A stretch of 63,883 nucleotides of DNA, the filler included, from Olpidium bornovanus S191 (taxonomy: Eukaryota > Fungi > Olpidiomycota), in the NCBI GenBank assembly GCA_017911155.1. It is 32 parts of 32 records of this genome, joined end to end, with 100 filler letters (N's around TTAATTAATTAA, not from the genome) between each part and the next. Parts side by side here need not be neighbours in the genome. Positions count along the whole stretch, not along the records: positions 49,148 to 50,590 come from JAEFCI010011404.1; 31 more parts are not named here. One strand, 5' to 3'. The notes below the pieces were generated by a model, which saw only the letters and a list, made by a program, of their open reading frames with translations, did no database searches and was not told where the DNA came from. A program made the translations under genes and the position numbers. Positions 49,148 through 50,590 of the stretch are shown here, one piece after another (positions within the stretch are counted from its first letter, which is position 1; the number at the start of each line of letters is the position of its first letter).

Positions 49148-49180
<33 letters not shown>

Positions 49181-49182
49181 CA

Positions 49183-50590
49183 ATGTTCACGGACGAAAGC
49201 AGCGCTATACGTCTCAAGGCCGTGACCAGCCTCGGGACGATCGTGCGGCGGTCTGGGCTGCTGGTCGAGGTGGAGCAGGTGCAGCAGATGCTTGCTGCCG
49301 TCGAAGACGCCCATCAGAACATCCGCGCAGAGGCGTACCAGGTGTTCGGGTACGTCGTTTGCGTCTCGCCGTTTTTGCGAAAATTTGCTTCCCTCCCCTT
49401 TTTTTTAAGATTCTGTGCTGCCCCGGCCTTTACTTTTCTTCTAACAATCACCTGCGTCCAATGACCATCAAATTAGCGTGGTGACAGCGTCCAACGTTGA
49501 TTGCCTGCGGTTCTTGATCGAGCGCCTTTTCCACTTCATGATCGTCCGCCCCGAGGACCGGCTGCTGGTATACGAGGCTTTGGGAAAGATAGGAAGAAGC
49601 CATTTTGCGATGATAGGTGTGCAGAGTTTGACCGGCCCTGACGCGCCATCCGAGAAGGCGGGTGGGAAAAAAAATAATCAAGTGCTAAAAGAGCACACGT
49701 TTTTGGCGGGAAAGGCACCGAGCCTATGATTGACGAGCTGTTCATGTGGGACCGGAACTTCCTGCCGCGGGAGCACAGCACCGAGGACCAGTTTCGTACG
49801 TTTTTTGCGGGGCGTGCCGGAACGTTGCCGTGTTCGCGTTCACTGGGTTTTTCCCCGGCTCGGCTAACAGATCTTTTTTATTGTTGTGTTCCGAATTTGC
49901 AGACGTGGCGAAGCTGATTATGCTGTTTAACGCCGCATGCGTACAACCGGCCGTTTTGAACATGCTGCCGCCGTACGCGCTCGATCAGTATGGTTACGTC
50001 AGGGCGATGTTCGGTAACATTGTTCCCGAGGTGGAAGCGGTAAGTTTGTTTCTGGCGGAGGATCGGCGCGCCGAAAGGGCAACCTTAACCTCGTTTTCCC
50101 CTCTCCATCCCCCCCTTCCAAAAAAAAACGTTTCCGGACCCTAGGGACTTACGAAGCCGGACTCCTTTGGACTGAGCAGAACAGCGACTGATCAGAAGGT
50201 GGCGGTGGCGGACGTCCTCGCTCGTGGTACGCCACGCCGGGAGGGATGCACCCCGCATCTGCTCGGAGAGCGCCTGTTTTCTACGTCGGAAACTTTTCGC
50301 GTTCAATTTTCTGCGTTCTTGTGCCTAAGTCGGGAGGTGCCCGGGGGCGCCGGGATTTCCCCCGTTCCGTTTTAGTTCCTCCAAAACGCGAGGAGGGAGG
50401 ACTCGAATCCGTGGAGGAGATGATGGCAAAGGTGCACCAGCGAGTGTCGGGGCTCCACCAGCTGCTCGCGCAGGGCGAGTACGGCGAAACCGATTTCTGG
50501 ATACAACGGTGTAGAAGGTATAGGAAAATGCGCGCCGTTTATGCTTGTATGGTTTACGGTTTGTAGGATTTCGGTTTGGAGGAGACCATG
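49183..50590 (+). CDS. INTS4: Integrator complex subunit 4 (HEAT repeats), partial
   Basis: Exons 49183-49349, 49477-49616, about 49715-49795, about 49901-50039 and more. MFTDESSAIRL..EDAHQNIR..RPEDRLLVYEALGKIGRSH..HVAKLIMLFNAA..QYGYVRAMFGNIVP is collinear with remembered human MFNDEIEEVRL..EDSSRDIR..YPTDRDSIWKCLKFLGSRH..YIAVLVLIFNAA..HYAYLRDSLSHLVP. Confidence 0.85.

Follow-up and report, generated by a model that had tools for sequence, protein, structure and literature searches.

Integrator is usually described as a machine of metazoans, with a reduced form in plants, that yeasts do without, and models of how termination by Pol II evolved rest on this contrast between metazoans and yeasts. 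Olpidium (Olpidiomycota), which infects roots, is of all zoosporic fungi the nearest to the terrestrial ones, and a short contig from its assembly was originally predicted, from the DNA itself, to carry four spliced exons in a row that are collinear with the HEAT region in the centre of the Integrator subunit INTS4. This raises the question of whether the contig holds part of a genuine INTS4 gene, whether that gene belongs to the fungus, and what it would mean for Integrator in fungi. The window that we analysed is a stretch of 63,883 nt in which 32 parts of 32 records of the Olpidium bornovanus S191 assembly (GCA_017911155.1) are joined end to end, with 100 filler letters between each part and the next; all positions given here count along this window.

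The piece of interest, at positions 49148–50590 (1443 nt, 54% GC), is one entire short contig of the O. bornovanus assembly. Its + strand carries six exons with consistent phases, all internal to a single, partly covered INTS4-like gene, together with five complete introns that begin with GTACGT, GTAAGT, GTGTGC or GTACGC donors and end in AG acceptors (Table 1). The exons are 54–63% GC and the introns 45–60%, and GC at third codon positions (GC3) is 74%. The ATG at 49183 encodes a Met internal to the protein, aligned to M419 of human INTS4, and a HEAT repeat lies inside exon 1 (weak Pfam HEAT match, E = 0.0012). The run of A at the 5′ edge of the contig is probably the tail of an upstream intron (AG at 49179–49180) and the site of the assembly break; runs rich in A or T are also present within introns 1 and 4. 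An Rfam scan of the piece returned no match, and hence no intronic snoRNA.

Table 1. Features of the INTS4-like contig, in window positions. X1 and X5 are the public runs whose contigs span the exons.
Feature	Positions	Strand	Evidence
A run, 31 nt	49149–49179		5′ end of contig; sequence read directly
Exon 1, 5′ side cut by contig end	49183–49349	+	INTS4 best matches; joint 49349/49477
Intron 1, 127 nt, GTACGT..TAG	49350–49476	+	Skipped in X1 and X5 contigs
Exon 2	49477–49616	+	Sole PDB match fly INTS4 544–582; transcript joints
Intron 2, 98 nt, GTGTGC..AAG	49617–49714	+	Skipped in X1 and X5 contigs
Exon 3	49715–49795	+	Within continuous INTS4 alignment; transcript joints
Intron 3, 107 nt, GTACGT..CAG	49796–49902	+	Skipped in X1 and X5 contigs
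Exon 4	49903–50039	+	Sole PDB match fly INTS4 614–654; INTS4 alignment; transcript joints
Intron 4, 105 nt, GTAAGT..TAG	50040–50144	+	Skipped in X1 and X5 contigs
Exon 5	50145–50226	+	Transcript joints; without PDB match
Intron 5, 149 nt, GTACGC..TAG	50227–50375	+	Spliced out in RNA-derived contigs
Exon 6	50376–~50517	+	Transcript contigs; without PDB match
Intron 6 start, cut by 3′ contig end	50518–50590	+	Both contigs diverge after 50521

Support for this gene structure comes from assembled public sequencing runs. Logan contigs of 20 runs, which come from nine studies or more, contain the stretch, and the best-matching runs have about 0.41 of its sampled words, which is the share expected from exons only. 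One contig each in run X1 (study P1, 1292 nt, depth 5.8) and run X5 (study P2, 2726 nt, depth 69.5) spans the six exons with zero mismatches, and both have all five introns removed exactly at the predicted GT..AG borders. These two runs are presumed to be RNA, and the removal of the five GT..AG introns shows a spliced transcript. The gene is expressed and spliced. The original prediction was therefore right that the exons are spliced, with five introns removed in two studies, but its count of four exons was too low, as the piece contains six.

The same two contigs reveal that the gene continues beyond the piece. After 50521 they share the same further letters, which are unrelated to the piece and constitute a seventh exon outside the contig, into which the mRNA goes on. 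The match of these contigs extends to 50521 and the canonical GT lies at 50518, which leaves a 4-nt ambiguity at the 3′ border of exon 6: either these four letters also open exon 7, or the true junction lies elsewhere. The reading frame is open across all six exons and the 30 loose letters beyond them. The X5 contig reaches past the piece by 1460 nt on the upstream and 513 nt on the downstream side, which puts the mRNA at no less than 2.7 kb, the size expected for an INTS4-sized protein. A pseudogene is unlikely because the frame stays open over six exons, splicing is precise and the GC3 bias is strong. One soil and one root metagenome, as well as runs with three other organism labels, also contained small shares of the stretch. 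Two raw RNA-seq runs with the same coded species label, X21 and X24, had no reads on the piece in a 6% sample; the label common to the spliced-transcript runs and the large 2026 RNA-seq runs is probably that of the host plant or sample and not that of Olpidium.

A protein from this gene is already on deposit. A HMMER search with exon 1 retrieved KAG5456647.1 (P0001 in our searches) at 100% identity, under the title ‘MAG: hypothetical protein BJ554DRAFT_3557, partial [Olpidium bornovanus]’, so that the gene is without INTS4 annotation. KAG5456647.1 covers exons 1–5 and then runs through intron 5 to a stop, such that its last 49 residues (203–251) derive from intron 5 and exon 6 is missing from the model. 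Because the transcript contigs splice out intron 5 and enter exon 6 at 50376, the 3′ end of KAG5456647.1 is mis-modelled, and the valid portion, residues 1–202, served as our spliced query. The exact product of a 106-aa ORF at 50246–50563 was not on record in our look-up.

To place the gene within a family, the exons were searched singly against all PDB sequences. INTS4 provided the top matches of exon 1 (fly, 7sn8_D, E = 0.004; human, residues 419–468, E = 0.2), and fly INTS4 was the only match of exon 2 (E = 0.75) and of exon 4 (E = 0.37), while exon 3 alone, at 26 aa too short for such a search, gave no INTS4 match in PDB. Exons 1–4 fall on fly INTS4 residues 486–532, 544–582, 586–613 (exon 3, from the continuous alignment of the deposited model) and 614–654, in the same order as in the contig. 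Exons 1, 2 and 4 are three independent queries, and the same protein was therefore reached by each of them and collinearly. These searches confirmed, on the + strand, the predicted collinearity of four exons with the central HEAT region of INTS4.

The spliced query gave a much clearer result. Residues 1–202 of KAG5456647.1 matched fly INTS4 (7sn8_D, residues 486–655) at E = 1e-17 and human INTS4 (7cun_D, residues 419–588) at E = 5.8e-12, and only INTS4 chains were significant in PDB, the next family being CAND1 (residues 839–941, E = 0.36). The INTS4 alignment is one stretch of 174 columns, almost gap-free, with a single 2-residue gap region, and its identity, counted by hand from the alignments, is about 28% to fly and about 23% to human INTS4. 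It includes an ‘MF.DE..(V/I)RL’ HEAT helix and continues past the HEAT repeat into the non-repeat helices of exons 2–4, and exon 4 carries a conserved ‘FNAA ... Y.Y.R ... VP’ stretch common to fly and human INTS4. Symplekin, PP2A-A, condensin and PDS5 did not appear at E ≤ 1 with the same query against PDB. Identification of the gene as an INTS4 homologue is, by these sequence comparisons, well supported.

Exons 5 and 6 behave differently from exons 1–4. For the roughly 75 residues that they encode (50145–50517), no similarity was detectable with INTS4 of fly or human, nor with any other PDB sequence; this stretch probably links the N- and C-terminal domains as a flexible, rapidly evolving centre. 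Pfam searches with the single exons and with KAG5456647.1 returned sub-threshold, generic HEAT signals and no INTS4-specific family, in a region for which Pfam has no INTS4 model; the INTS4_C family (PF25458) and the 8-helix bundle (PF24493), domains expected to lie mostly downstream, matched neither any exon nor the deposited protein. Beyond KAG5456647.1 itself, the HMMER search with exon 1, which at 55 aa is too short to reach distant INTS4 proteins, returned only multi-repeat HEAT proteins. A word search with KAG5456647.1 among proteins of 138–439 aa, a range that excludes full-length INTS4, matched only the protein itself, and two metagenome scans, with protein patterns and with an exact 24-mer, found no relatives.

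Predicted structure led to the same family. In a comparison with predicted models on both sides, the ESM Atlas model of the KAG5456647.1 protein (pTM 0.66) had INTS4 clusters as all five of its best structural matches, at TM 0.78–0.82 by query, and other HEAT proteins reached TM 0.58 at most. The INTS4 clusters matched come from animals and plants, the plant ones at TM 0.78. The Atlas feature search was less specific, with exon 1 leading to generic HEAT families and residues 1–202 reaching an INTS4 cluster only in fifth place. A single-sequence AlphaFold2 model of residues 1–202 had a pLDDT of 45.7 and was left out of the fold search.

Where the fragment would sit in the protein can be judged from the human cleavage module. 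In the N-terminal domain of human INTS4, twelve HEAT repeats stack into a solenoid, of which H1–H5 touch the MBL domain of INTS9, H5–H6 tether the CTD1 dimer and contact INTS11, and H7–H12 turn their convex face towards the INTS11 nuclease; the loop between H6 and H7 spans residues 264–280 (PMC7980224). Going by repeat length, we infer that human residues 419–588 correspond approximately to H10–H12 and the part where the central region begins. The fragment is thus about a quarter of an INTS4-sized protein and comes from its least diagnostic third, with H1–H6 and the C-terminal domain off the contig.

Among the known systems, animal INTS4 (human 7CUN and 7BFP; Drosophila 7SN8 chain D) is collinear with the Olpidium fragment over 174 residues, but identity is just 23–28% or so, the residues of exons 5 and 6 are unalignable, and the H1–H6 repeats and beta-rich C-terminal domain of the animal protein both fall outside the Olpidium contig. 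Plants offer the other comparison. Their DSP1–4 are homologues of INTS7, INTS3, INTS4 and INTS9, respectively, and form a smaller complex with the INTS11-like nuclease CPSF73-I (PMC10533338). The original prediction had named DSP1 as the plant homologue of INTS4, which is incorrect, since DSP1 is the homologue of INTS7 and that of INTS4 stands third in the series (PMC10533338). Like the Olpidium protein, the plant INTS4 homologue is non-animal, and it works within a reduced or divergent Integrator-like complex; one Atlas cluster bears the name ‘Protein SIEL’, and its likeness to the Olpidium protein is one of predicted fold. Processing of snRNA 3′ ends has been demonstrated for the plant complex; the Olpidium protein is known here from sequence and transcripts.

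We next considered what is on record about Integrator in fungi. S. pombe is stated to lack both Integrator and NELF (PMC12624956), and our literature searches returned no paper that treats what Integrator does in fungi or how it is distributed among them. Four Integrator families are nevertheless tabulated in Supplementary Data 2a of Merenyi et al. (2023; PMC10406608), which lists families of protists and non-Dikarya fungi that were lost in the Dikarya ancestor. INTS3 (mcl_5120) is present in 0.75 of the species of Chytridiomycota, 0.667 of Zoopagomycota and 0.786 of Mucoromycota; in the same order of groups, the shares are 0.875, 0.583 and 0.357 for INTS6-like (mcl_5310), 0.875, 0.167 and 0.929 for INTS7 (mcl_5314), and 0.875, 0.333 and 0.929 for INTS2 (mcl_5490) (PMC10406608). 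All four are at 0 in every Dikarya group, in Blastocladiomycota and in Olpidiomycota, and the main text of that study makes no mention of Integrator (PMC10406608). The presence of Integrator genes in early-diverging fungi has therefore been recorded before, although without discussion, and with four such families in non-Dikarya fungi, Integrator genes are to be expected in a non-Dikarya fungus. The claim that an Integrator-type system is essentially unstudied in fungi accordingly stands for function, on which we found no work, and fails for presence. Those rows and the Olpidium gene concern the same complex and the same retention in early-diverging fungi, but INTS4 is not named in them and Olpidiomycota score 0; the Olpidium contig adds both, so that what is new here is the cleavage-module scaffold INTS4 and the first positive sign of Integrator in Olpidium. 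The zeros for Olpidium are plausibly due to a fragmentary assembly, whose BUSCO completeness was put at 0.33 in a later study.

The fungal origin of the contig deserves scrutiny, as the Olpidium assembly is a metagenome bin: the zoospores were not axenic and had been rinsed from the roots of cucumber plants growing in sand (Chang et al., 2021; PMC7865070). The database label, Olpidium bornovanus, agrees with the fungal-type genome of the original prediction. The label is not proof, since other root organisms were collected together with the zoospores (PMC7865070), and the contig could hold a real INTS4 from another eukaryote, such as a protist or a different early-diverging fungus, mis-binned as Olpidium: its 1443 nt are short for composition-based binning, and the assembly otherwise scores 0 for INTS2, INTS3, INTS6-like and INTS7 (PMC10406608). 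We think this unlikely. The authors of the assembly kept contigs with a non-fungal best match only if there was also a fungal match at 1e-30 (PMC7865070), and the identical spliced sequence occurs in Logan contigs from at least five studies under one label and, in small shares, in a root and a soil metagenome, as would fit a common root endoparasite; zeros for the remaining subunits carry little weight in an assembly with 33% BUSCO completeness. The same absences might suggest that the gene is an INTS4 of Olpidium that has been orphaned or repurposed without a canonical Integrator, pairing with nucleases of the CPSF73/CPSF100 type or serving some other role. Plants do use the smaller DSP1–4 complex with its INTS11-like nuclease (PMC10533338), the table of Merenyi et al. 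has no other Integrator family for Olpidium (PMC10406608), and exons 5 and 6 have diverged beyond recognition. An incomplete assembly accounts for the absences equally well, however, and conservation over 174 columns among the fungus, fly and human suggests a structural constraint kept in all three. We consider an orphaned INTS4 distinctly improbable.

The least credible alternative, to which we give very little weight, is that the gene encodes a different HEAT protein (symplekin, PP2A-A, condensin or PDS5, or CAND1) and resembles INTS4 only through generic repeats. It draws on the weak and generic Pfam signals of exon 1 (HEAT, HEAT_2, PDS5 and Cnd1), on the multi-repeat HEAT proteins retrieved with exon 1 and on the mixed HEAT families among the Atlas feature matches. 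With 202 residues, by contrast, INTS4 was matched at 1e-17 and 6e-12 against 0.36 for CAND1, and the match is collinear and reaches beyond the HEAT repeat into exons 2–4; symplekin, PP2A-A and condensin, best matches to which would have counted against the original prediction, are absent at E ≤ 1 although they are in PDB; and the five INTS4 clusters top the structure search with a clear gap to the rest. Symplekin (Pta1) is the functional analogue of INTS4, a two-domain HEAT scaffold of the CPSF73–CPSF100 beta-CASP pair, and the two scaffolds bind opposite sides of their nuclease dimers (PMC7980224); in sequence, symplekin has no match to the Olpidium fragment at E ≤ 1 in PDB.

With these alternatives weighed, we consider it highly probable that the contig is from Olpidium and contains six internal exons of an expressed, intact INTS4 orthologue, equivalent to human residues 419–588 plus about 75 lineage-specific residues. 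Orthology over the whole protein, partnership with INTS9 and INTS11, and function we infer by analogy. If the human and fly cleavage modules are a guide, the full protein would most likely be a HEAT-repeat scaffold that fixes the INTS9–INTS11 nuclease pair in a set arrangement, with both nuclease domains locked, as they are in animals, into a module on Pol II that is competent for cleavage. Such a module would cut nascent Pol II transcripts, serving the 3′ ends of snRNAs as well as promoter-proximal termination. The wider inference of the original prediction, that an Integrator-type termination system operates in this lineage, is plausible. Whether Olpidium and non-Dikarya fungi generally keep a working INTS4–INTS9–INTS11 module for snRNA maturation and promoter-proximal Pol II termination is, in our judgement, evenly balanced.

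Were this so, the loss of Integrator and full reliance on termination of the Nrd1–Nab3–Sen1 type would be an event at the level of Dikarya and not of fungi, and transformable chytrids or Mucorales could become fungal models for Integrator. A spliced and expressed INTS4 in Olpidium supports a loss of Integrator in the ancestor of Dikarya. The subunits tabulated for chytrids, Zoopagomycota and Mucoromycota belong to the backbone and the phosphatase module, and INTS4 joins them as the scaffold of the cleavage module. The gain is incremental, because the general point was already implicit in the published comparative data. For the database record, the GenBank ‘hypothetical protein’ receives an identity and its wrong 3′ end is corrected.

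Two further families in the table of Merenyi et al. bear mention. An unnamed Armadillo/HEAT family, mcl_5675, was considered as a possible INTS4 family and set aside as unproven: it is at 1 in Olpidiomycota, Chytridiomycota and Blastocladiomycota, 0 in Zoopagomycota and 0.43 in Mucoromycota, it tracks flagellated species and is absent from Capsaspora as well as Zoopagomycota, and one of its members is tagged as Condensin subunit 1 C-terminal (PMC10406608). An OB-fold family, mcl_5400, has a pattern like that of the INTS rows (0.75 in Chytridiomycota, 0.93 in Mucoromycota and 0 in Dikarya; PMC10406608), and could be a candidate for the SOSS-B/NABP partner of INTS3.
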